A program made the position numbers and the translations under genes. This document shows, one piece after another, positions 14,858 to 48,574 of a stretch of DNA of 64,000 nt. The stretch spans positions 1,054,001-1,118,000 of the forward strand of contig LSRY02000021.1 of assembly GCA_001643675.2 (NCBI GenBank). Direction: 5' to 3'. Origin of the DNA: Monocercomonoides exilis PA203 (lineage: Eukaryota; Protista; Preaxostyla). A model generated the notes under the pieces. That model did not search any database. It was not told the origin of the DNA and saw only the letters and a program-made list of their open reading frames with translations. Each line of letters begins with the position of its first letter. Positions within the stretch are counted from its first letter, which is position 1.

Positions 14858-17800
14858 ATGAAAAAGAATTCATGTTCTATGTGTCAAATGACTATCCTCA
14901 CTTTTTTTTATGTTTTTTTGGAGTTGACAGCAGCTTCTACTCCGCTTGTTAATTCATTTAGCAAAATTCCTCTTCACGGAACTCCTCCTTCTCCTCGGCA
15001 ATATCCAATTTTGGTTCCATTGCCATCCTCCACTGTGGAAAATCCTGCTTTTATAGCATTTGGTGGAATAGATGGAAGGAAGTACTATCTCGAGAATGTT
15101 CTTCAATTCGGAATTAATTCTGGAGAATGGAACAGCGTAGAAGTTAATGGTATAACATCAACTCCAAAGCGATGCGACTTTGCTTATTATACAACTAAGT
15201 CGGACATTGTCATATGGGGAGGAATGGGGCCAGATGGATTTTACGATGATATGTGGTCATTTAATCTCCAAACAAAGGTCTGGTCTGAAGTTTCACAAAG
15301 CCATCAAAGGCCAACAGCAAGACAGGGAGCAGCATTTGCTCAATATGATAAATTTTTTGCAATTTTTGGAGGAAGAGATAATTCTCAAAAACAAAATGAT
15401 GCGTGGCTATTCAACATTGAAACGCATGAATGGAGTCAAATAGCAAAAACAGATAACACTCAGGCACCAAATGTACCATCAACCAGGGCATATGGTAATG
15501 CTTATCTATCAAGTTCATATATTTATGTGTTTGGCGGATACACCTCAAAAGGGAATCAAAGCGAAAAAGTGTACAGACACCCTTTGAATCCAAATGCAAA
15601 CGAAGACAATAAATGGGAACTTATGACTCTTCAAAAAATTGAAAAATCTAATTCTAGAACTTCTGATGTTAATTATGAGTTAAATGAAGATGTTCCAAGA
15701 CCACGATCATCGAGCGGAATTGCAGTTGAAGATAAGCGCGTGTTTATTTTTGGAGGAGAAGATTGCTCTGTCAGCCCAGTGCAGTATGTTAGAGAGACAC
15801 TTTTGTATGATTTTAGCACAACCGACACTGACAAGACGGTGAAATGGCAAATTTTTCCAATGAAAGATGAAGATAATGTCTCGCCTAGACGTGATTGCGG
15901 AACAACTCTAATGAAGATAAAGAAGGGAGAGAATATTATCACAAAGGTATTTGCATTCGGTGGCATACGCGATGGCTCTGTTTTAGGGGATTTGGTTTCA
16001 TTAACCGTTCCCAGCAAAAATGAATATGTTTTTTCTGAGAAAGTGTATTTCAATTCATCAAAGGAGAATTCAGTTCAAAGTGAAACGATTGAATCTCCTA
16101 ACGAATATGGAGCCATTGGCGAGTATGTGCAAGAAACGGTTCCTGTTCCAAGTATTCCTAATCCAAGAGCGCATCACAGAGCGCTTGCGGCTTTGGGCAG
16201 GATGTGGGTGTTTGGCGGAACAGGAGAAGGTGGAGTGTTGTTCAATGATCTTTTCTCCTTTGATTTAACTGATCCAGATCCTGTTTCGAAAGGAACTTGG
16301 CTTGAACATTCATACGTAGGAGACGTTTCTCCTCCAGCAAAATCCAATTTTGTGTTTGTAGAGCATTCAGGGCGCTTATTCATTTTTGGAGGGAAAGGAA
16401 TCGATCCAATCACAGGAAAGCAGACTTCCACAAATGATTTATGGGAATACTCTATTTTGGCAAAGCAATGGAAGCAAATAAAGCCCAAAACGAATCTTCG
16501 TCCACCTCTCTGCTATGATTCTGCAGGAATATTGCTGCATAAGCATATCTATATATTTGGGGGAAGAAAAGATAACATGGACGTCATTAACGAGCTCTGG
16601 AGTTTCAGTTTAGTTTCGCTTGAATGGAAAAAGCATAAATATATGCCTCAACTCACAAATTCAGTTCCTAAACCTATTACAGAAAAAACTTTGCAGGATT
16701 ACGTGATGAATGAAAGGCGGAATGATCGAAATAATTCAAATAGCGCTCAAAAGAATGAAGAAAAAAGAATCAGAGGAACGGGAAAGCAATCAAATGATTC
16801 ATTAAACACAATATTTTCTAATGGAAAAGAATCGAATGAAGAGCAAGCTTCTAGTCGAGCATCTATTTGGAGTTTGAGTCCTTCTGAGCAAAGACGCTAT
16901 CGCAAATACCCTGGCCTTGCTGACATTGACGGAATAGATATGACTGAGCATCCTTCACGTCATTCACAATTTGCTCAAACAGGCAAAGATTCTTCAATTC
17001 AACGTTCTTTGGGAAATTTATCATCAGATTCATATGAGCCTCTTCCCAGAGAATCAGCAACGCTATACCCTACAACATATACACATAACGGTGTTGAGCG
17101 AGATTTGGTGATAATTGCTGGTGGTGTTAATGAAGCACGCGAAAGCTATCTGACACTCGATCGAATCATTCTTCCACTTGAAAATGATGATTCGCCGGAC
17201 GTGATTGTTCTTGATCCGTTTAATCCAGACATTGAAGAATATAAAAATATACCAATATACTATCGATCTTACACAGCTGTAGCTGAAAATGGAATCGTTT
17301 CGTTTGCAGGCTTATCTGTTGACGATGCAAAGGATCGAATTAACTATTGGAAACTTAATGATCAAAGCCACATTGAATTTTTCTATTGCCAAGATAAAGA
17401 AAAATATCCATTTATTTCAGGTGGCTCTGCTGTATATCATGGCAGAAAGCTTTTTTGCTTTGGCGGTAATATTGTTGGGCTGAAGCTTCCTTCTGAAAAT
17501 CAGTATCACAACCAGTTTTGGGTTCTGAACTTAAATCAATCCTATTTCAGCTGTTCTCCTGGGACAAAAAACGGAGAAGGAGAGCTGTGCGAAATCTGCG
17601 ATGTGGGCACCTTCAGCAAAAACTTTGCATCGAAAGATTGCGTTCAATGCAATGCAGGAAGTTACAATCCCATGAAAGGAGGAAAAGCTGGATATCATTG
17701 CATTGCCTGTCTTCAGGGCGAGTACAACAACAAAGATGGTCAAGGAAAATGCGAGCCGTGCGATGAAGGGAAATACTGCCCGATTGGTTCGAGGCTTCAA

Positions 17801-19066
17801 AATGCATCCAAACCAGAACTGAGAGATGTTGATCATCAGCCGCCTTTGTACGAGTCTAAGGATTCGTGGAGTTTAATAATAACAGGAATCAGCTATGGTG
17901 GTGGATTGTTAATAGGGATAATTATATCGCTTATTTGTGTCTGCTGTCCGTCTCGTTCGTATTTGTTTAAGCTTGACTTATTTTCGGATAAGCATTCAAA
18001 CAAGCTTGATCCAATTACAAACACTGCACCAAAGGTCCTTAAGAAAAGTAGAATTGGTGGATTTGTATCGATCATTTATTTGTGTTTTGCAATTGGAGCT
18101 GCATGTGCTGTTATTGTTGAATTCTGTGTGAATCATCTGACTGAGACAAAATCTGTTATTTCAGCAGTGATGGATCCATCGACTCAACTAAATAGTGTTG
18201 AGGTGAAATATTTTCGAGCTTCGTTGGAGCTGAAAGATTTTTTTGGTGGATGTGCAGCTGGAGTAGATGATCCTAATGTCGCAACTGACTGGACAGATTG
18301 CCACAAAGATTTTAGAGCTTCAACTTCACAAATAATAATAAAGGATGCTGATGGCAACACTAAAGATCCTGAACTCAAGTGCAAGCAGACTCCTTCAAAC
18401 AATAAATTACTCAGAAATGTTGTTGACTGTGAAGTTCAGCTTGAGCATAAGAATGTTGTGCTTGACTTTCCCAAATCGGGCACATTTCCGTCTATTTTCA
18501 TTGACACAAAGACAGAAGATGCTCATTGCTATGCAATGTATGCAACTTTAGAGGTTGATACAGGAATTGATTATGACAATATTCACAAGCGAGCTTCTCT
18601 AAATCAACTTTTGGCAACCTCAAAAACTGGAAAACCTTTCAAAGGAACTAACTCGACAAAATTTATTTTCCAGATGATTCCTTCAATTTTCACGAACCCC
18701 AGAGGTTACCCAACTGTTGGCTTTCAGATTGTTGAGACGAAGGTGAACGAAGGCTCAACAGCTGAAGCCGATGAAATATTTGTTCTTTATGGCCTTTCTG
18801 CAGAGATGCAATTTATCAAAGATGTTAATATTTTGAAAACAAATTGGGTTGAAAGACAAAAAATACCTGCCTTTTTGGCAAACATTATGTCAACAATGAT
18901 GGGCTTTATGGGAATATTTGGAAGCGCTGTGATGGTGCTTGAAGTGCTTTCTTCGATGAGGCTTCCCTGTGCAAATAAACTAAAAGAAGGTATTTTCAAA
19001 AAACTGAGAGACGATAAAGATGAAGAAGTGATGCCGCGTCACCAGTATTATGCCCCTATGATTTGA
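14858..19066 (+). CDS. Kelch-repeat surface protein: signal peptide, about two beta-propellers, GCC2/GCC3 (TNFR/ephrin-receptor-like) Cys-rich repeats, 3 predicted TMs
   Basis: Repeated FGG/WGG...D+W.F/Y...W Kelch motifs. CxxCxxGxY/F repeats (CEICDVGTFS, CVQCNAGSYN, CIACLQGEYN, CEPCDEGKYCP). Hydrophobic N-terminus and three C-terminal hydrophobic segments. Uninterrupted 1402-aa ORF. Confidence 0.9.
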   Translation: MKKNSCSMCQMTILTFFYVFLELTAASTPLVNSFSKIPLHGTPPSPRQYPILVPLPSSTVENPAFIAFGGIDGRKYYLENVLQFGINSGEWNSVEVNGITSTPKRCDFAYYTTKSDIVIWGGMGPDGFYDDMWSFNLQTKVWSEVSQSHQRPTARQGAAFAQYDKFFAIFGGRDNSQKQNDAWLFNIETHEWSQIAKTDNTQAPNVPSTRAYGNAYLSSSYIYVFGGYTSKGNQSEKVYRHPLNPNANEDNKWELMTLQKIEKSNSRTSDVNYELNEDVPRPRSSSGIAVEDKRVFIFGGEDCSVSPVQYVRETLLYDFSTTDTDKTVKWQIFPMKDEDNVSPRRDCGTTLMKIKKGENIITKVFAFGGIRDGSVLGDLVSLTVPSKNEYVFSEKVYFNSSKENSVQSETIESPNEYGAIGEYVQETVPVPSIPNPRAHHRALAALGRMWVFGGTGEGGVLFNDLFSFDLTDPDPVSKGTWLEHSYVGDVSPPAKSNFVFVEHSGRLFIFGGKGIDPITGKQTSTNDLWEYSILAKQWKQIKPKTNLRPPLCYDSAGILLHKHIYIFGGRKDNMDVINELWSFSLVSLEWKKHKYMPQLTNSVPKPITEKTLQDYVMNERRNDRNNSNSAQKNEEKRIRGTGKQSNDSLNTIFSNGKESNEEQASSRASIWSLSPSEQRRYRKYPGLADIDGIDMTEHPSRHSQFAQTGKDSSIQRSLGNLSSDSYEPLPRESATLYPTTYTHNGVERDLVIIAGGVNEARESYLTLDRIILPLENDDSPDVIVLDPFNPDIEEYKNIPIYYRSYTAVAENGIVSFAGLSVDDAKDRINYWKLNDQSHIEFFYCQDKEKYPFISGGSAVYHGRKLFCFGGNIVGLKLPSENQYHNQFWVLNLNQSYFSCSPGTKNGEGELCEICDVGTFSKNFASKDCVQCNAGSYNPMKGGKAGYHCIACLQGEYNNKDGQGKCEPCDEGKYCPIGSRLQNASKPELRDVDHQPPLYESKDSWSLIITGISYGGGLLIGIIISLICVCCPSRSYLFKLDLFSDKHSNKLDPITNTAPKVLKKSRIGGFVSIIYLCFAIGAACAVIVEFCVNHLTETKSVISAVMDPSTQLNSVEVKYFRASLELKDFFGGCAAGVDDPNVATDWTDCHKDFRASTSQIIIKDADGNTKDPELKCKQTPSNNKLLRNVVDCEVQLEHKNVVLDFPKSGTFPSIFIDTKTEDAHCYAMYATLEVDTGIDYDNIHKRASLNQLLATSKTGKPFKGTNSTKFIFQMIPSIFTNPRGYPTVGFQIVETKVNEGSTAEADEIFVLYGLSAEMQFIKDVNILKTNWVERQKIPAFLANIMSTMMGFMGIFGSAVMVLEVLSSMRLPCANKLKEGIFKKLRDDKDEEVMPRHQYYAPMI

Positions 19067-20314: not shown

Positions 20315-21199
20315 ATGATATTATTTTCGAGCTTAACGATTTTCTTTGTTGCTGGGTTCTTTTTTGATTCAATTTTTGCTGAATCAAGTGTTAGTCCTTC
20401 CAGTGATGATTCATATACTCTACCAAAAATCATATGGTTATATTGGGAAGGAGATATGAATCCTGAAGTTCGCTATCTTCTCCACAATTTTAAAGAAAAA
20501 ATCAAAGATTTCACACTTATTTTCATTACAAATACAACGATTAATTTATATTTGGACCCACTTACTATTCCATCTCAATTGAAACAATTTCCTCGCGCAA
20601 ACAAAGCTGATTTTTATCGAATGCAATTGCTTTATCAATATGGTGGATTGTGGATGGACTCAACAACGTACCTTAAAAACGACTCCCTCGTGGAAGAATG
20701 CTATCATGATCTAATGGAAGCAAAGGCGGATTTACTTGCATACAATAGTTGGTGGCATCCAGCTTATCACATTGAACTTTGCTTTATGATGGCCCCAAGA
20801 GGCAGTCCCCTTCTTGAAAAAGTCTTAAATGAGTTTAAAGTTATGGTTTCAACAGGAGCTGCTGCATATATGGAAAATAATATTAAAGGTGGAATTATAA
20901 TTAAGAGCCCTATTGTTTATACACCCCCAACAAAAACAGCTCCTGCACATTATGATACATATTTCGCTCCTTATGTGTGTATGCAAACTGTTGTTCAGAG
21001 GGTTTATAATGGAAATCCTAATGCAGTTCTTCGAAAATCCGAAGATGAACTTTACAAGCTTCAAGATTCGTGCAAATGGGATTCCAGATGCATCGCAAAA
21101 GAATGGATGACTAATCCAGAAATCCAAGAATATCCTATCGTAAAATTTCACTCGGGATCAAGAGGGAGAGTCGTGTTTCCAGCAGTTGAAATTATTTAA
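20315..21199 (+). CDS. GT32 / capsular-polysaccharide-synthesis-like glycosyltransferase with N-terminal signal or anchor
   Basis: LPKIIWLYW, KADFYRMQLLYQYGGLWMDST (the family SD++R+.+L..YGG+W+D signature) and FMMAPRGSPLL. Confidence 0.85.
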   Translation: MILFSSLTIFFVAGFFFDSIFAESSVSPSSDDSYTLPKIIWLYWEGDMNPEVRYLLHNFKEKIKDFTLIFITNTTINLYLDPLTIPSQLKQFPRANKADFYRMQLLYQYGGLWMDSTTYLKNDSLVEECYHDLMEAKADLLAYNSWWHPAYHIELCFMMAPRGSPLLEKVLNEFKVMVSTGAAAYMENNIKGGIIIKSPIVYTPPTKTAPAHYDTYFAPYVCMQTVVQRVYNGNPNAVLRKSEDELYKLQDSCKWDSRCIAKEWMTNPEIQEYPIVKFHSGSRGRVVFPAVEII

Positions 21200-21820: not shown

Positions 21821-24800
21821 CTACTGCATGTATAGATTCCGTTCAAAGCGTGCATCATATCTACTAAAATGATCAACCAGCACTCGAATAACAGCCTGAG
21901 AAACGCATCCTGCTGTGGCTGGATCCGAAAATCCCATCGTTGAAGGCGAATGCAGCGACGGGGAGAAAAGCAGGTCCCCCAGAAAAGTGACTCGCTGCCT
22001 CAGACGCAAATGCTCGCGATGGTGCTCTTTGCGAGCAGCTGCCACAGAAGTTGAAAACGAAGGCGATGTAGGAGTGTACGGCGCACTGAATGTGGGTGTG
22101 AGCACAGCCGTGTGGCCAAACACATTCGCCAGCGAGGTGAACTCCGGAGTCAGTCTCTGCTCCACTGGAAAGAGCGTCTCTTCGTCTTCGATGCTCTTCA
22201 GCGACTCAAAAATACACACTTCTTCCTGTTTGAACCATTGTTCCAGTGCTGCTAGAAGGCTGCGCAGAGAGGCTTGGATTGCATCGATGCGCTGTTCTAA
22301 GGGCTTTTTGTTTTTGCCGCTAGGCTTCGAGCTCAAACTGGGGAAAGAGCATTTAAAGACTGCTTGTGCAAATGCCACACCTCGTTTGAAGATGTATTTG
22401 TGCTCTTCTTTGTAGAATAAGTTGCTTCCAGTCACCTGCACAGCTATCTGCTTGTAGTACAAAGGAATCGGAGGAGGCTGAAGCTGTGCGGAGTGGTATT
22501 GCGGAACGATGATTGCGTGCTGATTGCCGAGATGGACGCGCGAAGTTCGATCCATCAGAGAAGAGACAGAAGCAGCTGGAGGAACAGATAGAGCAGTGGG
22601 AGGAAACTGAAGAGACACCAGCGAATGAGTCGAGGTTATGCCGTTGGGTGCTGCCTTCTGAGCAATTGGAGAAAGAACTTCCAACGTGGGAAGAGCAGAA
22701 ACAGAGGCTGCGTTTGAAGCTGGAAGAGAAGATGCGGAGGGAGTCAACGTTAATGAGCCAGATGTGAATGAAGGTGCGATGCGTGATGCAGACTGATGTG
22801 GTACAAGGCCTTGATGAAGAGAAGGAGACTGATAAGGCTGTTGTGTTTGTTGCTTTTGAGGTTGTAAAGGTCGAATTGAAGGAAGTGGAGGAGATATTGG
22901 AGCAGGCACTGTATAAGGGAACAGGGCTGATGCAGAAGATGAAGCAACAGTTGAAAAGGAGTTATGTGAAATAAGTGGCGGATTTGGTGAGCGTGAAAGA
23001 GAAGGAAGAGGAGGCGAAGCGAGCTGAGAAGGATAGCTTGGAACAATATCCTCGGGTGACCGAAACATTGTATTGGAAAATTCAGTTTCGCGCCTCGATC
23101 GTTTCGTCAAGGTGCCATTTTGCTGTGCGCTTAGAAGAATCTGAGGAGATGGGCTGGGAGAGTGCGATGGCATTTCATGTGTTGCATGGCGCTTGGCGCG
23201 GACTTGCATTTCAATTGCAGCTGTTGAAGAGTGTCTGACAAGGCGGCCACTCTTTTTTGAGCTGAGCCCGTAAAAGGTGCTTGTGGAAGGCACCATCATC
23301 ACCGAATGTGTAGATGTACGCCCAGTGAGCGAGCCAGGCTGCTCCACTGCTCCTGTGGCATTCGAACGTATCTCGTTGTTTCTCTCAGCTGAGAGCTGAT
23401 TGTTCTCGTCTCCAGACATCTCTCTCACGGCTGCTGGGTTAATTTGGTACAGATGGAGCACAGTTTCGCAGGAGTCGATCAGATCTGGTGGTAAAAGCGT
23501 GATGATTCGTGCAGCCTTTTCGCGAGTGACTGAGTAGATTCTCCGAATGGATGTGGTCAGAAAAAGAAAACTCAACAAAAGAGCCACGCAACACAGTACA
23601 GTTGACAGAATTACAGCAATGCTCGAGTCTCGTTCTGTTGCCACGCCATCTTCATAGATGATGTTTGTGAGTTGGTCGATTCCAACACCCAGATCGTATT
23701 TGATGGCAGACATTGTGAACTTGAAGAGCTCTGAGTCATAATTTACCAGAAATGTCTGGTTCGTCCTTTGCGCATCCATCGCAGAGTGTGCAAGGATGCT
23801 CATTGAGAACATGATCTGAGCAATCAGCTGCGACAGGCCAGCAACCGATGCATCTGCATGATAGATGCGCTGAGAAAGATCTGTTTTGCCACCGGGAAGC
23901 GCAAGGCACTCCTCTTCTGTTGAATAAAAGCAACTGCGCTGTTTCAAAAGATATTCCGTGTTCAGTTCAGCTGCAATGTGGATGTGCTCTCTGCCAAGAG
24001 TCACAGATCGCATGTAATTGCTTGAGTTATCGATGAAGTGGAGGAACGAATGAATAGCTTCAAAGTGCTCGCTGACTCCACCCAAAATCTGCCCCACAAG
24101 AGAAGGCTGGTCAGACAGATGGTCTGTTGAGTTCCAAACAGGATTGATGGAGTTTGGAAACTCGTATCGTTCGTATGTCTGAATGGTACTGCCAGGAAAG
24201 CAGCAGCGTAGCAAAAGAGTTTGCATAGCGTGCAAAAGAACAGAACGCTCGCTGGACAGCACGATTTTCGAGCACAGATTAGTGGCAGTATCGCCAAACA
24301 GCTTGACAACAGTAGACAGAACAGCTGAGACAGCAATTATTAGCAAGAGCGACACAATCATAATTATAATTAGCGAGCGAGGAATAAGCGAAGGCAGCGA
24401 TGAGCGCAAAACATTGTTCAGTGCAATGATTTCATCTGTTGTTTCCTTCTCCCAATCTGAATCATCCACAGAATTGCGCAGAGCTCCACTTGCAACAAAA
24501 GGCACCTGAGTCGTAGTTAACTCCACTTTGTTCTCAGAAGTTGTGTTAGAAATTGGATAAAAAGGTGATTGCTGAGCAGCAGGAAACGAAGGGGTATCAT
24601 CCACATCTGGAATGACAAGTGGAGAAGGTGTTGCTATCCCTCGCTTATCTTGATAAGGACGAAGATGCAAAGAAAACGATGACGATCCGCGATCTTTGAT
24701 GTGAGAATGCATTACATTATACATATTTGATTCGTCTGTGCTTTCATCTGCTTTGATAGTCGGAGAAGACGAAGGAGGAAAAGCAGGAATTTCGCTGTTG

Positions 24801-27800
24801 TCATTTTGAGTTGTGGATGATGTTGCATCCGTTTCATTGTTAGAGGATATGCCTTTATTGCCATTCGCTTTGTTTAATGCGCCAATTCCAGCTGAATCAG
24901 TTAGTTGTTTCTGCTCTTCAAAGATGTGTTTCTTGTGGCTATCTTCCTCTTTTGGTGTCTTTGCAGATGATGTTTGAGGTTCAGAAGGATTTATATCATC
25001 TGAAGCAGCAATAGGGAAAAACTGATAAGGAAATGGAATCATGTTGAAGTTTTGCTGACCGTCTGGAAATTGATCTTGTCGCATCTGAATGAACTGCTGG
25101 AACATCTGCTGCTGCATTTGGGGTGGTATGTTCTGAAAGCCAAAAAAGAACGGAAACTGCGAAGATTGCACTGGAAAGGTGTGTGGTGAGAGCTCGTTTG
25201 AGTCTTTGCTTGAAGCAGCTGTTGATTGGTTGGCCTCGTCTTTTGTCTGCTTGCTTTTGGATGAATGTGAATGCCTTTCGTGCTTTTCGTGTCTGTGTCT
25301 GCTTTTGTGCTTTAAGTTGTGACGATGTTTGGAATGTCTGCGGTGTTTGTGACGATGAGAAGATTTCGTCTTTTTCTTCGATGAATGCAAACGATCATAA
25401 TTGTCTGAAGAAGAAGATGTTGAAGAAGATGTCGAAGAAGAAGAATGTTTGGGTTTAGGTGGAAGCTGAGAAAAGACAGTTGTAACATTCTTCTCTTCCC
25501 TCAACGCACCTGACTGTGTTTTATTAACTGGTTGCTTTTTCAGATCTCCTGTGATTGCTCCGGCTGACTCAGAATTTTTCATAGCCATTTCGATTTCAAC
25601 AACATCTCTTTGCTTTTGTTCGTTTTTTCCATCAAAGCCCGCAACCTCTTTCTCACTTTCTTTTGTGATTTTTTCGCTTTCTTCTCTTTCTTGTTGAATC
25701 ACCTCAGTTTCACTTTCAGTATTTTTCCGAGCCTTCGAAATACCATTTGCAACATGAGGCGCTGCATCCAGCTGTGTGAATGGCATATTAATTATATCTT
25801 CTTTGAATGAATCCGGTGAATACACCATAAATTCATCTACTTGTACTGAAATCTCATTCGTTTCAACAACTTTTCTTTCTCCAGTTGAATTACCATTTTT
25901 CTTTTTCTTTTTCTTCTTTTTCTTTTTCTTCTTTTCTGATGTCGTTTCATTTCCAGCTTGAAGTTTTGCATTTTTTGAACTTTCAACAGCATTCTCAGCC
26001 TTCAATTCTTTTGTTGAAGTTTCATTTTGATTCGCTTCAGTGCTCTTCTCATTCTTTGCATTATATTCCCCTTCATCTTTTTGAGATTTAGTATTATTCA
26101 ACTCCATTTGTGCAACTGCTGCAAGCGCCTGGCTTTGCAGCTGTTGTGCCAGTTGAGCATCCACTTTTGATATGTCCACATCCACAAACAGACTGCCAGG
26201 CTGAAGCAGATTCTGATCTTGAATGGACTTCCCTCCAAAATACGGCTGGCTGTAAGATTCGCTCAGCTGCAGACAAGAATTCGATGCTCTTGTTGGTGTG
26301 GGCTTGTGGATGATGAGTGTGGTAGCAGAGTTGGTTGAGTTCAGCGACTGAGTCAGAGAAACAGCGGATTCTTGGTGCGAAAGAGGAGAGAGAGGAGATG
26401 TGGGCGCAAACTGTGCAGCTGATTGATTGAAATCCGCTGGAGGAGAACGGAGCTTATCTGAATGAAAACTTCCCTGTTGCTGCTGCTGCTTCTGCTGGGC
26501 AGACAAACCATCAACGCTTGCTGAATTACCGCCAAGTTCGAATGAATGCGAATGCTGAGTAAAAAGCATGTTGTCTGCAGATTGTGGTTTGAACGGTGAG
26601 TTCAAGTACGAAGCAGAATGAGAACGCAAACGCAAAAAGGAGATAGTTGGGCGATTGACTGCTGTCATTGGCAGAAAAGGAAGAGAGGGAGATGCACTCA
26701 ACCGACCTAGTGGAGATGCCAAGCTCAGTGAAAGTGGAGAGAATGTAGGTGAAATCAAAGAACTGTGCACATTGTTTGCAGTAGGTGAAGCAAGCGAGTT
26801 GGATGAGGATGTCAAAGGAGATGTAGACAAAGGCTGGGTAGAAGAAATTGCATTACCAGCAAAGCCAGTTGGAGTAGATGTGCCAGAATGTTCGTGGAGC
26901 GAGTGATACGATACAGCAACAAAAGGCGAAGAAGGACTGGAGACAAGTTCTTGGTCACGCATGGGCGCTGTGGTTGTGGCAGAGAAGAAAAGCTGAGTGG
27001 TGTTGTGAGAAGAAGGAGAATGCATCGACAAAGTTGAAGGAGATGAAGGAAGATAACTCGGAGCAGCTGCCTGTGCATGAGACATCTTCGACTGAAGAGA
27101 CGAAAGTGAAGACAGCATTTCGCTTATCTGTGTGTTTGTGTGTGAATCAGATATTTTTGCTGGCTGTGACGTAGCAAAAGCAGGTTGCGTGTTTGAGGAT
27201 GAGTTGCCTGACTGAAGAAGAATGCTGGATGATTGAGATGATCCTTCTTTGATTTGAAAGTTCTTTAGTTCTGATGGAGACGCATTTTCGGTGTTATCCT
27301 CCGAATTGCTTTTGCTTTTGCTTTTGAAAATTTCCTCTTTTTTCTCATTCAATATCGCATTTTTTACACCAGCTTCTTCTTCTTCATTCGAAGACAAGTC
27401 ACAAACATCTTGATTTTCAGTCAGCTGAGTGCTCACTTTTTCCAAGTTGTGTTTTGGAGTTATTTCTTTTTCTAATTTGAATAGGCTGGTCTGCACCTCT
27501 TGATTTGGCAGCTTTGCCAACGATCCAACGGTCTCTTCTGCTTTAAGCAGCGCATCCTCAGCTTCGTCTTCTTCGCCCACCGACATCACAACAGACACCA
27601 GCGAAGAAGACGAAGAAGAAGCCGATGAAGAAGACGAAGTCAGATTTGATCTCTGAAACATTATCTGGTCGTCTGAAGCAGCGTCCACTTGATAGCTGAC
27701 AGGAGACAGCGGTTGAGAAAGTGTTGCTGTTGTGCCGACTGAAAATGTGCTGGTGGCAGCCAACTTCACACCTCCGCTTCTTTCTGAGAAGAGAAAGAGC

Positions 27801-30800
27801 ACATCGTCCATCTCAGCATCATGCAACTGGTCATTTGCACTGTTACCATCAGCCTTTTGTGATGCTTCAAACAAATCCTTTGCAAAATCATTACTGTTGC
27901 TAATGTTATTGTTATCTCTTTGATGCTCATCTGCTGCGATGCTTGCTGTTATTTCATCATCTTCATCTTCTCCTTCATCTTCTGTATTCCCTTGCAAGTT
28001 GAATTCATCATCTTTTAATTCATCTCCTTTCTTCCACATATTTTGCATGTTGCTTCCTATTTGTGCACCTCCATTTCTTCCAAATGTTGTTATTTCATCA
28101 GCCGATGCATTCCTCCTCCTTCTTCCTCCAAACGCATTGTTGTTTTTCCTGTGTAATCGAAGATAGTGCTTTGCCGATTCCCCTTCCTCCAGACGCGTGA
28201 GTGAGTGACCTAAACTCTTTTGTGAGCTATCCAACAATAGCGGTGAATAAGAAGATGATCGACCTGACAAAACAGAGTGATTGGCACTCGAATTAACACT
28301 GCAAGCACTTTTCGGTGAACATACAGAAGAAGTTCCTGGCTTCATATCACCACGAGAAATGGCGGGAATGGCAGTTCGCATGTTGTAAGGCGAGAACTGA
28401 TTCGATTGTGATGGAACTCTGATGTGAGAAGAGTTGCTGACTGCAGAGTTGAGTGAAGACGAGTTGAGGCGCTCGAGTTGGTGCACACTCTGAAACAGCT
28501 CAGAGAGTGAGGGGTCGTTGCTGCCACGCACATTATCCAGAAACGTCTGCACTGAATTTCCTTCTTCACTTGCTCGCCTCATCGCATTCAGCGAAAACAG
28601 ACCCGACCGCTTTGAGTGCTGAAGCCTTTCGTTTTCTGTGTCAATTTTTTCAGTCTCAAACGGATCGCGTTCTCTGTCGCTGCTGGCGGGAAAGCGAAAA
28701 CCTCTGAAATCTTCAAAGCATTCGTTTGCATCACCAATTTGGTGATTCATGTTCAGATTCAGATTCAGGTTAAGATTCATCTCCTCTTCGTCTTCGTTGT
28801 CCAAGTTCTCAGCCATCTCGTCAATTTCGTCTTTCTCCTCTTCGACATCTTTCAAGTCAGCCACTTCGCGCGCACGCTCTCCCATTGCATCTCTGCTGGC
28901 TATCACAACCATTTGCATTGATACGCCCATCGACTTCTTCAAGTCAGCAGCCTCCAAATAGTATGTGATGCTTACCAGTATCAGCGCAATGAACGCACAT
29001 GTCACAGTCATTATGAGAGGGATAAGGCCAACAACATCAGTTGCATCCCATGCTTCCTCCCACGATGCATAAATTGCTTTGCGCAGGCCGCTAATAATTG
29101 GCTGGAGTGAATTAGTCAGAACAGTCATCAGGTTTGCATCGACAGATGTTGTTGGCAGTTTGGCATTTGTGATCACTTTCAAGTTGTCTGCGTAGAACGA
29201 CATCTGATTCAGTGCTGATATGAGAGAAACCCTGTTCACTGTCTGCCCAGTGGCTGAGTGAAGAGACGTGTCATAAGTGAAGAGGATTGTCGGGATATCG
29301 ACAGACTCCCACGGGACTATCACATTTGTGAGGGAGCTGATGGAAGAAGTGACAGAAGAGATGACATCTGCACACTCATCCATGCCAGCACGGATGGTGT
29401 CCATGTCATCCAAATAAGGAACAGGTGCTTGCTGGTGTAAGTGTGGAGTGGAAGTTGATGAGTCAGTTGATAATGAAGGAGAAATTGTAAACGCTTCCTT
29501 TGAAGATGATGAAAAGGATGAAGATGTTAAGGATGAACTTTGATACGAATTAGAAGGATTTGTGGAAGAAGATTCGTTTTCAAATGATATAGTAGAAATT
29601 GGAGGTGTTTCTGATTGTATAATATTCAGCGATGTTTCCTGTGTTGCATTTAATGAAATTCTATTTGATTCAGATTCATTCAAATAATGAGAGTTCATAT
29701 GTTCAATCCTATTCGCTTCACTATTTTCCATTTGGATGATATACGCCCAATTCAGCTGCTCGTGCGCATACATCTCCATCGACAAGAAGCTGAGCTTCGA
29801 AATCGCCTGTGAAACAGTGCTCATCACCATCAGATTGTGCGACTCTTCAATTGCTTTTCCACCGAGAATGTGGAATATAACAGCAGCAATGATCAGCTCC
29901 ACCATCAGCACAAGTTGGCACACGCCCTGCACAGTGAAGAAGATGCGTGCTCTTTTGTGTGTCAGCTTGTCTGCTTCTGACTCCTGGACAAACGAGGTGT
30001 GCGTGAGTGATGGCTGCGATGCTGCCTGATATGCAGACACAGCATTCGCTGCAGCAGCTGACAAGTGCCGCCCTGTCGCCTCGCAGCGAGAAAGCTCTTG
30101 TGGATGTGCATTGTACAACGGAGAAGATGTTGGTGTAGAGCCAGTCGTGTGTGAGGAATGATGTTCTTTGAAAGGTTCATTACGATACAGCGAGGGAGAA
30201 AGGAGCAGCGGAGAAATAGAACGTGACACCGGAGAAAATGGGGAGGCTCCGATTGATGCAGATGGTGCAATGGTTAGCATAGCAGAGGCTGGAATGGAAG
30301 CAGAGGAAGAGATTGCGCTTGAGAAAGGCAAATGAAATGCCCCACTTTTTTCTCTCTTCGTTGGGATGGTGTCTGCGCTGATTGTGCCCAGCGACGGAGA
30401 AAACAGAAGCGAGTCTGACGAAAGCACTTTGCGCTGCATAGATGGCAGCTGTGCATCAGACTCACCCTGAAAGGATGAAATTGAAGCTCCTCGTGATCTT
30501 TGCGGGATGGAGGCAAATGACACGCCTCCGTTCATGTCAAACAGAGTTGAGGAGAAGCCAGTTCCTGAGCGCTGTCTGAAAGGAATTGACTTGTCGTCTG
30601 GCTTCTCTTTGAATGCTCTGCCTTCGTTCATTTTCTGGTTGAGCAACAGTTTCATCTGAAGCAGCTCTCTCTTCTTCGTCTTCCGCGCTTCTTTCTTAGC
30701 TACAATCATCTCGTCAATCTCCTTCAGCCGCAAATGCACCGTCTGCGCTATTTCTTCATCGCGGAACACATCAATCAGCAGTCTGAAGTACAACTTCAGC

Positions 30801-33537
30801 ACACTCCGATCAAGTGGATGCACCATCAGCACCTCCTCATACAGATTTTGCGCTTCCCTTTCAGCCACAAGCAGCTTCCCTGCCATTTCAACAAGCGTTG
30901 CATAGTCTGGCGTGGTCTGTGACAGCACCACCCATACATTCTTCAGGATCATCAGAGCATCGTTGTGTGCATCAATCGCCTTCTTCACAAGCGAATGCTG
31001 TGAACCAGAGCCAAATGGTGAGTTGTCACCTTCTTCACCTCCTCCTCCGCCAAATCCTCTATTTATTCCACTTTGTCTGAGCAAGTGCTCAGCATCGATA
31101 GTTCCATCGTGTTGCAGCAGAAGCTGCCGATTCAACCCTATTTCGCTGGCTGCTCCATCCATACTGCGCTCTGCTCCTCCAAATTGCCCGGAAAAATACC
31201 CATCTTCTTCGTCTTCATGCTGATCCAACATTGTCGTGTCTCCGTCTTCTGCTGCGTATGTTGTAGTGTGGCGATTGGAAATGATTGAGGGATTATCATT
31301 GATTGTTCCTGTGTTCTGTGCAAAATGCAGCAGCGATGGACTTTGCATGCTCTGAATGACATGAAACAGATCATTTTGAGCAGTGCCTGACTTCTTCTTC
31401 TCCATCTGATGCCTCGCCAGAACATGCGCTGCCTGTGAGATGACTGTCTGTGAAGGACGGAAGAACTCGTGCTGCGGATCGACACACGCAGCAGTCACGT
31501 TGAGGATGATGTTGTCTTCGCCGTCTGCTTTTTCCTCGTCTTTTTTCTCCATCAGCACGCGGATCCCATTCGCCTTCTCTGCCGTGTCGCACTCTCTCTC
31601 AACGAAGAAGAGGTGCATTTTGCTTCTCCAGTCGCTGGCGATGTTCCGCATTCTCTCCAGCATCATGTGGTACCCTCTCGAATGATACGCAAAGCTCTGC
31701 AGAAAATGCGCATAGTCCAACATGAGTGCGCAATTTGTGGGATTTCGGTGGAGTGCCTTCAAATAAACACAGTTTGCATATGCAACATATTCGTCTGTGC
31801 GGAAGCTGCGATCGTGCTGAAGAAATCTCAATGTCTTTTCAACATGCTTTGGGTCTTTGAACTTAGGCAGTGAAGAAATGATGGATTGAATGTGTAGCTG
31901 GAGATCTTCTTTTTCATTGTTTGGGTCTCCATTCAACTGAAGTGTAGTGAAATGAACAGGTGTCTTCTGAAGTGGCTGATGTGAATCGTTTGGATGAGAT
32001 GACTGAGGAAACGGTGCAAACAAAGGTGGATAGAAAGAGTTGTGAGGCGGGTTTGAAGTGGAAGGAAAAGAAGACGAAGAAGCAGAAGCGGAAGCAGAAG
32101 CCGAGGTGTTGTTGTTCTGCCTGTGTGACAGGTCAGTTTGAGAAGGAGAAAACAGAATGTGGTGGTTTGTGTAGAACTGGTTGGCAGATGGCGAAGTAGG
32201 CGACAGCAGACCAGAAGTCGACGTGTTGGTGTTTTGGATCTGCTGCAGCGCATTCCGCGGAGTGCGTGGGTGTGTTATGGTGCTCGTTATGCCCTTGGCA
32301 AAGCTCGACTCCAGGAGACACAGAGTCAGCTCCTTCACATCGATGATTGGCTTTGAATCAGCAGAAAGCAGCCACAGCCTGCGCTGCCGCCAGCATATGA
32401 CGCGCCACATTGCGATGGAAAGAGCAATTATTGCAACGAGTGACACGATAATTGTCACCAAAATGAGAATCTTCTGCTTAACAGACAGAACAGGATATTC
32501 AACCAAATCCAATATACCATAGCAAATGATTTCGTGTGTTATTCTGCTCTGGGCAAAAAACAAAAACTGGAATGCATAAAGGAAGTTACCGCTGCTGTGG
32601 TAGCATGGTTGCTCAAAAACAAACCACCATGCAACAAAAAGTGAGCATATAGCAGTCACTATCATTCTCCAAATGTGCCAGTCAACAAGAAAACGCATTC
32701 CAAATGTCATGCCAAAATGCATCACAGGAACAACCACTCGATATAATCCATTACGCGCAGCGAAAAAGCCTCCATGCTTCTGGTTTGTGTTGACAGTGTG
32801 ATAAGTTATCATAAGAACCAGAAATATCAATGCTGGAAGTGTAATGATCAATGAAACAACAAATGCAACTAAATGAATTGGAGAGTTGTGAAAGCACTCA
32901 ATGTTTCCACTTCTTATTGTGTAAGGTCCATCTGGATTTCGTTTTATACAGTCAAGGGGCACAATTATCAGATTCAGCATCAAAATAAACATTGATTGTG
33001 TAAAAAACATCATCGAATATCTATAGAATCGAATCAAAAAGGGATGAGTCGACACAATTTTTTCATAGAAAATAGCGAATATGCTATGCCATATGTATAT
33101 CAGAAGAATTACACCCAAACAAATAAAGGATCCATAAATTCCAAAATCACCTTCAAAAAATGCAAGTGTCATTCCACTAAAATAACCACAGTTCTTATAA
33201 AATACGTAAAACATAAAAGATATGATAAAATTAAATTATCAATTGATTATACTTTAGAAATTCGTGAAATAGTATTTGTTTGCGTTGAAATGTAGAAAGT
33301 GCCAAGACTCAAAAAAGATAGTGTTTGAAGAAGCCAAATACAAAGTTCCAACGTTTTATTTGGATGTTTTATCTAAATATGTTAGAATCATTCAAAACAA
33401 AAGAAAAATATATAAAAATTGCAAACTGATGAATACAGAGGGAAAAAATAGGCAAAAAGTGTTCTTTCACTTTTTGATTGCCCATTTATACCAGTTCTAA
33501 CAAGTTTATCTGATGCATTCGATGGAGGAGGCCCCAT
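21821..33537 (-). CDS. TmcB/TmcC-like giant multipass membrane protein with a C-terminal hemerythrin-like domain (~3867 aa; exons 33537-33427, 33372-33253, 33193-21821)
   Basis: Two phase-0 GT-AG introns (54 and 59 nt) add 77 aa in frame upstream of the 3797-aa ORF. N-terminal multi-TM block with PLDC...IECF; TPR-like LDYAHFL and LKLYFRLLIDVF segments; two further TM pairs. C-terminal EEHKYIFK, WFKQEE, EHHREH, LVDHFSRYD. Confidence 0.8.
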
Positions 33538-35531: not shown

Positions 35532-38500
35532 ATGGAAGATTCATGGCTTTACTATAATTCAATAATTACATTATCTTTGCCGCAACAAAAAAACTATCCA
35601 AAATTATGTATAAATGGAGAGAATGATATTTTAACTGTTTCATCATTTCAGAAAATTACAGACATCCAAACATTAGGGAAAAGCAAAACAAATTTATGGA
35701 TTTTAGAAGCCGATGAATCTTATTCATCAGAAATAAGCCAGTATGTTAAAAATACTCAATTTAAAAATTTTTTAAATTTTTATGATTTTCAGAAGTAACT
35801 TATTTTCAAAAGAAAAACAATTAACATTCGGATCTAGAATTCGTTTAAAGGTATGTAGTTAAATTATTTTTAGGAATTTTCGTTGTATTTTTGAACTTTT
35901 AAAGAATTATGTTCATCAATCATACCTCACAGCTCGAAGAGATATTGTTCATCAACTTACCGGAGAAACTGTTCCATACATTTCGTATACAAATGATCCT
36001 TCTGTTGATGGTTTGGTAAAAAAAACATTTTATGTGACCTTTTTTAATTTTGAAAATTTGTGATTCCGAAGAAACTACATGGGAAATTCTTGCTGTAAAC
36101 ACTCAAATTCGCCCCGGACTTCCTGTTTTGAAAAATGATAATATCATTTTACGACATTTTTCAAGCGGACTTTATCTTTCTGTTTGCAAATATTGCTACT
36201 TTTCTATATTTCTATTATTTAACAATATTTAACTTTTTGTTATAATTTTTATGAATAATTATTAGCCCGATGAATTTTCACCATTAGACCCAACATCCTC
36301 TTTTTTTCATCATTTCACGATTCCATCCGCGTTGAGCCGAGAGGCACCCGTCCGAATCCCACTTCATCTCACAGCAGCCACACAAACATGGAACATTTCA
36401 TTGCATTCGTCTCTTCCGCGCCCGGACCAGATTCTGATTGGCAGCGCAATTACGCTGATGGCAGAAGACATCGACGGGGTTGTTGTGCCTCCTGTGTCTC
36501 CAGCGTATTCGGGGATGCTCAAACGGAATATCAACAGAGCTGCGCCGATTGTTCCGCTTCAGTTTTCAGAAGGCGACAGAATTCCATTCAGCATAAATGA
36601 CGCTTTCATCATTGAGAAAGCAGAAGATGCAGAAGACGAACAAGAAAATCCTGTGAAGATAGCAGAAGATCAGAGAGAGAAAGAGAAATTAGCATTCAAA
36701 TTGGATTCTGTTGACGATTTTGAGCTTAGAAACCTGAAAAAGACACTAAAAATGATCAAAAGTGAGTCCAACGAAGAAGAAAGCACAGACCAAGTGCTTC
36801 GATATGGGCAGAAAGTGCGGGTGAAGAGTGTGCTGAAGGCAGAGTATTTGGGGTGGGACGAGGAAGGATACAAAGCAGAGGCCGCCAGCAGAGAAAAGCA
36901 GCACCAACTGTACCTCACCCACACCAACCAAAACGATCTGATTGGCATTTCTCATCCACCCGCACTGCCTCGTGTTCTGTCGTTCATTCGCCTTCCTGCT
37001 GAAAGCGGGTTTTTGACTGTGTGCCCCACGCCTGCCAGCTCAGAAGAGTGGGAAGGAGGAATGGAAGGGGCTGATATGCACACTCCACCAGCCACGCCTC
37101 ATCCTCTTCAGCTGGCCAGCCTCAATCTCTCTCTCTCGATGGCAAAAGGGAATGTGCAGAGGACGCCTTCTTCTGCTTCTCTTTTGCCTCCATCGACGTC
37201 TCCCACACTGCTCATTGCTCACAGCTCACACGGCAGCATCCTCAACGGAGGAGGAGGAGGAGGAGGAGGAGGAGGAGGAGGAGGAGGAGGAGGAGGAGGA
37301 GGAAGTGATGTCGAAGAGAAAAGTGAATTTCAAGTGAAATTTGATTCGCGCCTGGAAAAGCTGAGGCAGCTGACGTTGTTTGAGGTGCGGCCATATCTGA
37401 GTCAGGAAGAGCTTCTTCATTTGGCAGCTCAAAAGGGAGCATCAAAAACATCATCTTCTTCTGCTGCTGCTTCTTCTGTGGTATTTGCAGCAGAAATGGA
37501 TGAAAAGTCAAATAATTCTTCTGCTTCTTCGTCTTCATCATCATCATCTTCTTCTTCTTCTTGTTCTTGTTCTTCTTCTTCTTCTGATTCAGATTCTGAG
37601 GTTTCTGCTTTATTTGGATTGCCTGTCAACAATTTCAAGCCATTTGTGCTGTATCACTGCGCCACCCGCACCACACTCACTTTTCACACTGTGAAATCTT
37701 CCTCTTCTTCTTCCTCCTCTTCCTCTTTTCACTCTTCATCTGCATCTTCAACTTCGTCCTCTTCTTCTTCCTCTTCCTCTTCTTCTTCCATTCCTCTGTT
37801 CACTTCATCCACAAACGCTGAAATAGACACAATGCTATCTCCATCTGCTGTCAACACTTCATATTACAAAAAACCCATTGGATATCTTTCTCTCGACAGC
37901 TCTGCTTCTTCTTCCTCTTCCTTTTCTTCTTCTGCCAATTCATCTGTCTCACCTTCTTCTTCAAATTCTTTGCCTTCTCTTTCATTCACATCAGCAAATT
38001 CTTCCTCCTCCTCTTCTTCTTCTTCTTCTTCTCTTCATTCTCTTTCTCTTCATCAGCACGGCCTCCCAATTTCTGGCCACGTCTTGCCCGAAAGCTGGCT
38101 GGCGCTGTATTATGAAACGCTTCCCTTTGCCTCTGCTTTGCGAAGGCTGCGCTATACCCTCAGCAAAACACTCTTTTCTGCCTCTTCCTCCTCTTTCCAT
38201 CCATTTGCTGTGATCGAGGCAACTCCTTCACTTTGCCTGATCATCGCAAAATTACTCCGGTTTTTGAATCCTTCTTCCTCCATTCCTCCGCTTGAGAAGT
38301 TTATTTCGGCGAATTTGCTCTCAAAAATACTGAAAAAGCCGGAAAATGCTGTCATTTCACTCCAATTAAAAGAAAGCTATTTCAACAGACTGCAAAATTC
38401 GTCATTCAGAACACCCAGCGGAGCTGTCACACCTTCTTATTCATCTTCCTCTGCTTCTTCTTCTGGCGCTTCCACCCCAAACAGACAGCCAAAGTACCAT

Positions 38501-47500: not shown

Positions 47501-48574
47501 AAAGTTGATGTACTAGGAGCCAATGGTATTGATATCAAGCATCACAGAGAGGTTGACCATGATCCTTGGGCATATTTTGGTTATTATGTTGCACTAATTG
47601 AGTATATAAATGCTGGAAACGAGTCAGAATTGAATGGAGATGAAAGTTACATGTACAACTGCTTTAAAACAAAGAATATCACATATTTTCCAGATGGGCG
47701 TTGCACAACATTAGACAGACGAGAAGAAGCAGAGAAAACTGCTCACATTCATGAAATGGAAGAAGCGCATATCGCGCAAAAGCAGAGAGATGCTGAAATA
47801 GCGCTTTTGTGGGAATGGGAAGAGAAAAAGCGCCGAGACAAGGAAAGACATACAGGAATGATCACAGCAGCATCAAGAAGCCACACTCTTGTGGATGTGG
47901 CAAAGGCGCGCGAGACAGGAGATCTATCGCCTCTTCTCAAAAGTCTGAGCACAGAAGTGAAAGCTATTGCAAATATGGCAAGACAGGAAGGAAAGGCAAT
48001 CAAGACGGCAGCTGTAGATGCAGCGCAAACAGCAGGATTGATTCGATTTTCAATGCTGAAACGCAAAACAGCGGATGAAGAGTGGAGGGATAAGTATCTG
48101 GAAAAAGAAACAGATGAAGAGTTTCGATTAACAAAAAAGAAAGAGGAAGATATTAAAGTATCGTCTTCTTCTGCAGTACCCGCTAAGAAATTGATTCCTT
48201 CTCCATCGAGCCGTATGTCTCCTCCACCGTTTCTTCCTTCTCAAATAGCAAGTGCACGTGTTTCGCCTCCTGCATCGCCAGCTCCTTCGCTCTCATTGCA
48301 AACAAAAGCTTCGGTTGATCAGCCAAAAGACGGTGCAGCTTTTGGAATGCCTGTTTATCATGCTCATCCTCCTTCGTATCTTTCAAATGATGCGCGTTTT
48401 GATCAAGTTCCAATGCAACTTCGGCCTTTTTCTGAGCATAGTTCTGAAACTCACAATGTTTCATTCTCAAACAAAACGCAATTGGCATTTCAAGAAAAGA
48501 AACAAAGTGCTGCAAAGCCCAAACCTCAAGACAAAGAAAAAAAGGAGAGCTTTTTCAAGCGAATTTTTAAGTAA
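35532..48574 (+). CDS. IP3 receptor / ryanodine receptor family Ca2+-release channel (~4263 aa; exons 35532-35740, 35793-35850, 35905-36010, 36072-36181, 36266-48574)
   Basis: MIR-like motifs (LTFGSRIRLKNYVHQSYL, IILRHFSSGLYLS, LRYGQKVRVKSV...YL). RIH-associated QLCEGHN..AQN and SLTEMMQGPCVGNQ. IEIMR...RIYF, a 6-TM block, LFNIVTGIIVDSFGEIR, the CFVCGL...H...H Zn finger and GDESY. Four short GT-AG introns link the 5' exons in frame. Confidence 0.93.
37246..37302 (+). repeat. (GGA)n microsatellite encoding poly-Gly inside the channel gene
   Basis: About 19 GGA units, directly visible. Confidence 0.9.

Follow-up and report, generated by a model that had tools for sequence, protein, structure and literature searches.

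In hemerythrins, one of the two irons does not bind O2 and is held by three histidine residues of helices 3 and 4. The O2-binding iron is held by two histidines of helices 1 and 2, and a glutamate and an aspartate bridge both metals. DcrH of Desulfovibrio vulgaris (PDB 2avk, 2awc) is a membrane receptor with a cytosolic C-terminal hemerythrin bundle. It keeps all seven ligands and signals via HAMP and methyl-accepting domains. The bacteriohemerythrin of Methylococcus capsulatus (PDB 4xpx; mutants 4xpw, 4xpy and 4xq1) stands alone as a soluble 131-residue protein, and its di-iron site is complete. In FBXL5 of animals, and BRUTUS/HRZ of plants, a hemerythrin-like bundle acts as a regulatory metal- or O2-sensing module and not as an O2 carrier. 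Dictyostelium TmcB and TmcC ('tiny macrocysts'), the namesakes of Pfam family PF25474, carry the TPR_TmcB repeat in a multipass membrane protein and have been linked to cAMP signalling. Here, we describe a giant gene of the oxymonad Monocercomonoides exilis PA203, an organism that lacks mitochondria and lives in the low-oxygen gut. The gene is on the minus strand of a 64,000-nucleotide stretch, hereafter the window (GenBank assembly GCA_001643675.2, contig LSRY02000021.1, positions 1,054,001 to 1,118,000). Its product is a TmcB-like multipass protein whose C-terminal tail is, almost certainly, a hemerythrin-derived domain.

On balance, we favour the view that the gene is a fast-evolving, double-length paralogue in an oxymonad family of TmcB-like multipass proteins ending in a cytosolic hemerythrin-type bundle. 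An original prediction, made from the letters of the window, had offered 'a degenerate member of a Tmc-hemerythrin family' as one alternative. That alternative is borne out by the recurrence of such tails at 59 of 69 TPR_TmcB loci, by colinearity with paralogues, by homology of the tail and by its predicted bundle.

The closest systems are the oxymonad paralogues (MONOS_2049, MONOS_286 and MONOS_11592; KAK2960695 and KAK2957477), which have the same plan and the same five invariant ligands. Conversely, our protein has 3,867 residues rather than ~1,700-2,600, and a 346-residue spacer separates its tail from the membrane. A 45-residue insert within the tail is common only to a copy on contig 29. 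The ligand string, H-W-E-H-H-H-D, is unique, and the tail escapes both Pfam and the first family profile. Compared with DcrH, the protein has no such output domain, has Trp in place of one ligand and carries its bundle far from the membrane. The likeness to TmcB and TmcC is the TPR_TmcB repeat in a multipass protein. With FBXL5 and BRUTUS/HRZ, which are soluble ubiquitin-ligase subunits with different ligand sets, the role proposed here shares the principle alone.

A family of TmcB-like proteins with hemerythrin-type tails

The M. exilis genome (82.3 Mb, 101 contigs) was searched for related loci. The Pfam hemerythrin model (PF01814) exceeded its threshold at 13 places, all within frames of TmcB-like genes. 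Two truncated copies are among these frames; the remaining 11 are intact, with 1,365-3,424 residues. Both TPR_TmcB and a C-terminal hemerythrin domain were found in seven of the eight frames scanned whole with Pfam. A profile made from 12 paralogue tails detected ~60 hemerythrin-type loci. TPR_TmcB itself is present at at least 69 loci. At 59 of the 69, a hemerythrin-type tail lies downstream, on the same strand and within 13 kb.

The tails were aligned as a family. This alignment, A3, has 51 tails, including that of our gene; 40 were added in a wider sampling. In searches of PDB sequences, the A3 profile matched bacteriohemerythrin (E 3.5e-17), DcrH-Hr (E 8e-15) and myohemerythrin (E 2e-8). 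The M. capsulatus protein and its mutants were the best solved-structure matches (E 3.5e-17 to 4e-16). The profile also matched 30,026 proteins in a representative library. Since A3 recognises both solved hemerythrins and this large set of library proteins, we take the tail domain of the family to be a true hemerythrin, as judged from sequence.

Members of the family can be found in public databases. The open frame L012 (contig C35) is NCBI protein MONOS_2049, to which databases assign PF01814 together with PF25474. Blattamonas nauphoetae has giant proteins with the same tail, named 'putative hemerythrin' at NCBI (KAK2960695, KAK2957477). A word-based protein search with the family alignment returned oxymonads only (M. 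exilis, Blattamonas and Streblomastix), including one TmcB relative from Streblomastix strix. In word-based searches with single sequences, the MONOS_2049 tail retrieved itself alone, and residues 1-900 of our protein retrieved none. For all 21 members from the word search (P0017, P0029, P0043, P0044, P0063 and others), the precomputed annotation is PF25474 only. Most of the 21 have the tail; the Pfam hemerythrin model misses it, and the family profile matches it with E 1e-40 or better in most. Public Pfam-based annotation under-counts the hemerythrin domain several-fold in this family.

Our gene belongs to the family by colinear homology. In BLASTP comparisons, it aligns with the paralogue L019 in order from residue 11 to residue 3747 (E 5e-26, 3e-8 and 5e-33); residues are numbered from an ATG at 33214, and the spliced model adds 70. 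The homology takes in the N-terminal block, the TPR region and the second loop module. The gene shares the whole family plan, which is an N-terminal block, the TmcB TPR, two membrane-flanked loop modules and a tail. Coordinates of all parts are collected in Table 1. Residues 11-293 match L019 residues 4-275 (E 5e-26) and, with the helix of exon 2, this N-terminal block has ~6 membrane helices by hydropathy. The TPR_TmcB match is well above its cut-off (52.6 bits compared with 27; E 5.7e-14), and the genome scan finds the same place. The whole protein has ~10 hydrophobic helices. Thus, with a TPR match over threshold in a multipass protein, it is TmcB/TmcC-like. The original prediction saw no PAS domain and no nucleotide cyclase, and the Pfam scan of the protein likewise found neither.

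The first loop module matches paralogues in its C-terminal half (E 1e-11 to 1e-5). It is followed by the central low-complexity region, for which we found no Pfam match and no BLAST match to paralogues. Mainly because of this region, the protein is twice the usual length for the family. The second loop module consists of a membrane helix, a loop of ~235 residues and another membrane helix (2948-3219), and then a juxtamembrane helix, helix 0, with an LLP motif (3231-3243). In phmmer searches, it matches more than 30 members of the family (E 5e-36 to 1e-5), and in those that match better the module stops ~5-15 residues ahead of the hemerythrin tail. A possible internal duplication, with the two loop modules as its copies, was also considered and is unsupported (hhalign E 0.12).

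AlphaFold predicted the second loop module as a helical bundle (predicted local distance difference test, pLDDT, 84.4; predicted template modelling score, pTM, 0.74), the last helix of which continues through the membrane. The top structural matches were PilJ (Z 11.9), McpN (Z 10.8) and NarQ (Z 10.0), with TorS, QseE and Tsr also found; these Z values are under the level that is decisive for helical bundles. All are periplasmic four-helix-bundle ligand-binding or sensor domains of bacterial chemoreceptors and histidine kinases. A Foldseek search of the PDB with the module gave no match at E 1e-3 or better. At most, the model suggests a receptor-like input domain. In the family alignment of this module, A5, there are two conserved Cys residues, one invariant and the other in at least 90% of rows. 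A Pro, an Arg and an Asp are invariant in A5, and one His is near-invariant.

The tail of the divergent paralogue

The last 230 residues of the protein were used in a phmmer search. They matched 22 paralogue tails out of 51 tails, and all of the matches run through helix 3. There, KEHHREHLRLRQRVTFLGDLL of our gene is aligned to KHKREHLLLRQRLTLIGDQL; over its 21 residues, the helix-3 motif has 67% identity to L019. We also used a profile of 24 paralogue tails (class III), built with our gene and its nearest paralogue excluded. Against the full protein, this profile scored 25.5 bits (E 1.1e-5 for 16,800 proteins) and covered helices 3-4. Conversely, none of 2,000 shuffles of the tail exceeded 5.7 bits. 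The 24 tails are part of the A3 family, and through these intermediates the tail has significant homology to accepted hemerythrins. We regard the tail as homologous to the hemerythrin domain of the family on the strength of these comparisons. ESM Atlas features of the tail gave a best score of 0.78, and 0.75 for a hemerythrin cluster, which we treat as a lead only. Other searches were negative. With the tail as query, phmmer against PDB sequences gave chance matches only, such as dynein and p40phox, and a six-frame search of the genome found the tail itself alone.

A four-helix hemerythrin bundle had been anticipated for the C-terminus, with AlphaFold and Foldseek proposed as the check. From alignment A3, AlphaFold predicted an up-down four-helix bundle (pLDDT 78.6, pTM 0.73), with helices at 6-27, 43-85, 124-153 and 169-200 of its 201 residues. 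In most helix blocks, the pLDDT was at least 90. The top match of the model in VIA-align was DcrH-Hr (Z 12.3; root-mean-square deviation 2.5 Å over 119 of 133 residues; 18% identity). The M. capsulatus mutant structure 4xpw was also among the matches (Z 10.9, 19% identity). Identities of 18-19%, for a hemerythrin domain, are the highest among the structural matches. Foldseek found no match to the tail model in the PDB at E 1e-3 or better. As other bundles score nearly as well, the predicted fold is consistent with a hemerythrin and is not proof of one.

The tail contains an insert between helices 2 and 3. This had been described as a Ser/Thr/Pro stretch of ~45 residues, and its length is indeed 45 residues (3680-3724). 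AlphaFold gave low confidence to the core of this insert (pLDDT below 50 for model residues 103-121). L044, the contig-29 paralogue, has an open frame of 3,617 residues around C29:1088409 and was compared over its last 406 residues. It has an insert in the same place, in which corresponding strings (..F[ST]SL..V.. and S[SA]P[HY][ST]PT) occur at the same spacing. In BLASTP, the tail matches L044 with E 6e-4, and helix 2 of L044 is normal.

Two alternative registers for the first half of the tail were rejected. One puts RIDAIQ on helix 1. In the other, WFKQEE becomes helix 1, and a stretch before it becomes helix 0. The grounds were the same for both, namely the position of helix 0, the insert of L044 and the AlphaFold helices. 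The trimmed alignments also fit the register that we retain, which is that of the original prediction. The EEHKYIF helix cannot be helix 0, because helix 0, with its LLP motif, stands ~350 residues upstream and follows the last membrane helix.

The motifs EEHKYIFK, WFKQEE, EHHREH and LVDHFSRYDARF, on which the hemerythrin assignment was originally based, are all within the last 200 residues. Alignment A3 gives the ligand string H3605, W3660, E3664, H3731, H3735, H3782 and D3787. Hence, six of the seven positions in H ... HxxxE ... HxxxH ... HxxxxD are occupied as in hemerythrins, and the His of HxxxE is Trp. The claim that four His, the Glu and the Asp are retained, with Trp replacing that one His, is confirmed on A3. 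The Trp does not set this gene apart, however, as that His persists in just 11 of the 51 tails of the family.

Tabulating the ligands in paralogues had been suggested as a further check. Five positions proved near-invariant and two variable. The bridging Glu is present in all 51 tails, the two His of HxxxH in 49 and 50, and the His and Asp of HxxxxD in 48 and 50. The helix-1 position is His in 28 tails, Arg in 21 and Asn in 2. At the helix-2 position, there are 11 His, 19 Val, 5 Gln, 4 Ala and 12 others; the His has been lost in 40 of 51 tails, mostly to a hydrophobic residue. The full set of ligands is seen in only seven of the 51, and most are without one or both ligands of the O2-binding iron. 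In a tree of the second loop module, our gene falls inside the large clade of half-site tails with 100/100 support. Its branch is long, at 2.73 changes per column compared with a median of 0.75.

The tail of our gene has kept the invariant Glu, HxxxH and HxxxxD of the family in full. All five conserved ligand columns are retained, compared with four of ten other conserved columns, at an overall identity of ~20%. This difference in retention speaks for continued selection on the three-His, two-carboxylate half of the site.

Function of the tail and competing explanations

Basic residues follow the sixth and the last membrane helices, which would place both the TPR region and the tail in the cytosol. 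We propose that the tail bundle would hold metal there at its conserved three-His, two-carboxylate half. A second, more open iron may be bound via H3605. The metal state would then be either one iron or an open two-iron centre. Binding of some metal by the tail is probable. We divide our expectation about evenly between one metal, two metals and none.

The tail may be a regulatory or interaction module in a receptor, dependent on metal, redox state or O2. In such a scheme, the outer helical loop domains would receive external input, and the bundle would signal metal, redox state or exposure to O2 to the receptor's partners. In the sister genes examined, the bundle comes directly after the last membrane helix and could couple to the outer loop domain, like HAMP in NarQ. 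The family alignment places helix 1 ~20 residues after helix 0. In our gene, the bundle does not directly follow the last membrane helix, and the 346-residue spacer intervenes. Mechanical coupling to the membrane helices is unlikely in this copy, because the spacer is disordered. Since ~350 disordered residues separate tail and membrane, this copy may not work like its sisters. Probably, it is a tethered module or has lost the job.

A number of results weigh against this interpretation, and against the homology on which it is built. Pfam PF01814, run on the tail alone, scored 12.1 bits compared with a threshold of 25.3 (E 0.28, tail residues 60-99). Our gene is one of the ten TPR_TmcB loci without a tail match to the 12-tail profile; others are at C16:713100, C29:815650, C67:169843, C19:828982 and C14:903833. 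Profiles of 7 and 12 paralogue tails put the tail at chance level or missed it, and hhalign of the tail with the 12-sequence alignment gave a probability of 9.7%. Statistical support is confined to helices 3-4. Across MAFFT runs, three arrangements of the first half of the tail were obtained, so the placement of the helix-1 His and of the Trp varies. The AlphaFold model was built on the trimmed alignment A3, and its agreement with the register of helices 1 and 2 is not independent of that alignment. Unrelated four-helix bundles came within 1 Z unit of DcrH-Hr, at 5-11% identity, and the Foldseek result above points the same way. A near-invariant Asp, three residues ahead of the helix-1 ligand, is Lys in this tail. 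Finally, the family is without a recognisable output enzyme domain.

The best-surviving rival accepts descent from the family hemerythrin and denies metal binding. The tail would then be a mere helical bundle, or the useless end of a decaying, bloated paralogue. Much of its appeal comes from divergence. No other tail of the family is as divergent; neither Pfam nor the first family profile detects it, and the loop module of the gene sits on a long branch. It has taken up three insertions, among them the disordered 45-residue insert and the 346-residue spacer, and has lost one Fe2 ligand together with the conserved helix-1 Asp. A decaying gene is harder to reconcile with a frame of 11.4 kb that has no stop. 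The five invariant ligands and the helix-1 His have also been kept at ~20% identity, for which the chance is ~0.01 even at the 40% retention of other conserved columns, and the helices of the bundle are predicted confidently. We consider such a relic possible, but doubtful.

A variant of our preferred interpretation would set our gene and the contig-29 paralogue apart as a distinct subtype, with the bundle on a long disordered tether and with a disordered loop. In our gene, there would be a 'three-quarter' metal site, in which the O2-binding iron retains one of its two His and Trp lies over the other position. The tail would then act as an interaction module on a tether, gated by metal or redox state. 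It would also be a living intermediate that links the family's intact di-iron receptors to its half-site receptors. We think this unlikely.

Less likely again is a classical O2-binding di-iron sensor like DcrH-Hr or bacteriohemerythrin, in which O2 would bind at the second iron and the change would be relayed to the receptor. Six of the seven ligands are present, and the O2-sensing domain of DcrH is the best structural match. The organism lives as a microaerophile or an anaerobe, and its hemerythrin has been connected with oxygen stress (PMC6759080). Against this, the O2-binding iron is left with one His rather than two and has a bulky Trp at its site. The seven tails with all seven ligands are better candidates, and the 346-residue spacer argues against relay via a membrane helix.

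Chance resemblance, in which an unrelated helical region happens to have His, Glu and Asp at hemerythrin-like spacings, could draw on the weak Pfam match, the chance-level search of PDB sequences and the commonness of four-helix bundles, but is barely credible given the 24-tail profile score compared with shuffles, the 67% identity of the helix-3 motif to L019, the same place in a colinear family architecture, the insert common to another member and the A3 matches to the PDB that identify the paralogue tails as hemerythrin domains.

Gene model, surroundings and meaning

In the open reading frame listing of the window, the gene appears as a minus-strand frame of 3797 codons without a stop (21821-33214). 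A genome-wide six-frame scan found the same locus as an open frame of 3804 aa, also without stops. The original prediction started the gene further upstream, at 33537, and this start is supported by two short exons. Exon 1 matches residues 26-40 (BLASTP E 5e-5), and exon 2 residues 44-81 (E 8e-8), of the annotated paralogue MONOS_286 (P0043). These matches are in the same order as the exons, which enter the long frame at 33193; the exons were compared singly with the paralogue. The hydrophobic stretch of exon 2 is probably the first membrane helix. The spliced model has 37 + 40 + 3,790 = 3,867 residues.

Table 1. Positions in the window of the gene, the parts of its product and the neighbouring genes
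Feature	Position	Strand	Extent	Basis or remark
Exon 1	33427..33537	-	37 codons	ATG at 33537; ends in family motif F..FFPLY; GT donor at 33426
Intron 1	33373-33426	-	54 nt	GT..AG boundaries read from sequence
Exon 2	33253..33372	-	40 codons	KHPNK... plus hydrophobic stretch
Intron 2	33194-33252	-	59 nt	GT..AG boundaries read from sequence
Exon 3	21821..33193	-	3,790 codons + stop	long open frame
N-terminal block	32414..33127	-	residues 30-267	~5 hydrophobic helices; hydropathy scan
TPR_TmcB repeats	30710..30988	-	residues 743-835	Pfam PF25474; predicted cytosolic
First module (membrane helix, loop, membrane helix)	28979..29923	-	residues 1098-1412	loop ~280 aa; hydropathy
Central low-complexity region	24398..28978	-	~1,500 residues	Ser/Thr/Pro-rich and charged runs; composition in 200-aa windows
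Second module (membrane helix, helical loop, membrane helix) and juxtamembrane helix 0	23465..24397	-	residues 2940-3250	helix 0 ends LLPP; phmmer, AlphaFold
Spacer, helix 0 to tail domain	22427..23464	-	346 residues	36% Ser/Thr/Pro; composition
Tail, predicted hemerythrin-derived four-helix bundle	21824..22426	-	residues 3597-3797 (201 aa)	profile, phmmer, alignment A3, AlphaFold
Tail helices 1-4 (predicted)	~22346-22411, 22172-22300, 21968-22057, 21827-21922	-		AlphaFold
Insert between helices 2 and 3	22043..22177	-	residues 3680-3724 (45 residues)	Ser/Thr/Pro
Putative ligand codons	H 22400-22402, W 22235-22237, E 22223-22225, H 22022-22024, H 22010-22012, H 21869-21871, D 21854-21856	-		alignment A3
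Kelch-repeat protein	14858-19066	+	1,402 residues	neighbour
Caps_synth/DXD glycosyltransferase-like gene	20315-21199	+	294 residues	convergent; ends ~620 nt from the stop of the studied gene
IP3R/RyR-like channel gene	36332-48574	+	4,080-codon frame	RIH_assoc and Ion_trans matches; ~2.8 kb upstream, divergent

The neighbours are unrelated eukaryotic genes, and nothing suggests a functional cluster.

Other loci of the family had features of their own. The tails of L014 (C47:218000-227900) and L015 (C47:470000-479900) are near-identical to that of a 2,650-residue gene at C47:119031. Both lie on contig 47 and have short frames, one of 208 aa that contains an in-frame TAG and one of 522 aa. Each resembles a truncated duplicate or a pseudogene fragment of the C47:119031 gene. 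The B. nauphoetae protein KAK2960695 (P0004, 3353 aa) has hemerythrin-type stretches both in the middle and at the end, and a second TmcB-like N-terminal block follows the first tail. The gene model has probably joined two neighbouring genes of the family. Among bacterial proteins, the oxymonad tail profile best matches sensory proteins (P0008, P0011, P0026, P0053, P0057 and similar proteins) in which two or three hemerythrin domains stand in tandem at the C-terminus. Some are methyl-accepting chemoreceptors, and others resemble, by eye, multidomain sensors of the PAS/GAF/PP2C type. If the domain was acquired by gene transfer, these proteins may point to the type of donor.

The 2019 M. exilis genome paper lists hemerythrin among oxygen-stress genes gained from bacteria, and its main text gives no membrane-protein context for it (PMC6759080). 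In a literature search on TmcB, tiny macrocysts and hemerythrin in oxymonads, we found no description of a TmcB-hemerythrin fusion.

In our gene, the tail has drifted a long way, with the five ligands of one iron unchanged. That these ligands remain despite such drift argues that the half-site of one iron is what selection keeps. As biochemical test cases, the paralogues with an intact site, such as MONOS_2049, and those with a typical Arg/Val half-site, are better than this outlier. With ~60 receptor-like membrane proteins that have a hemerythrin-type end, Monocercomonoides has obvious candidates for the sensing of O2, redox state or iron.

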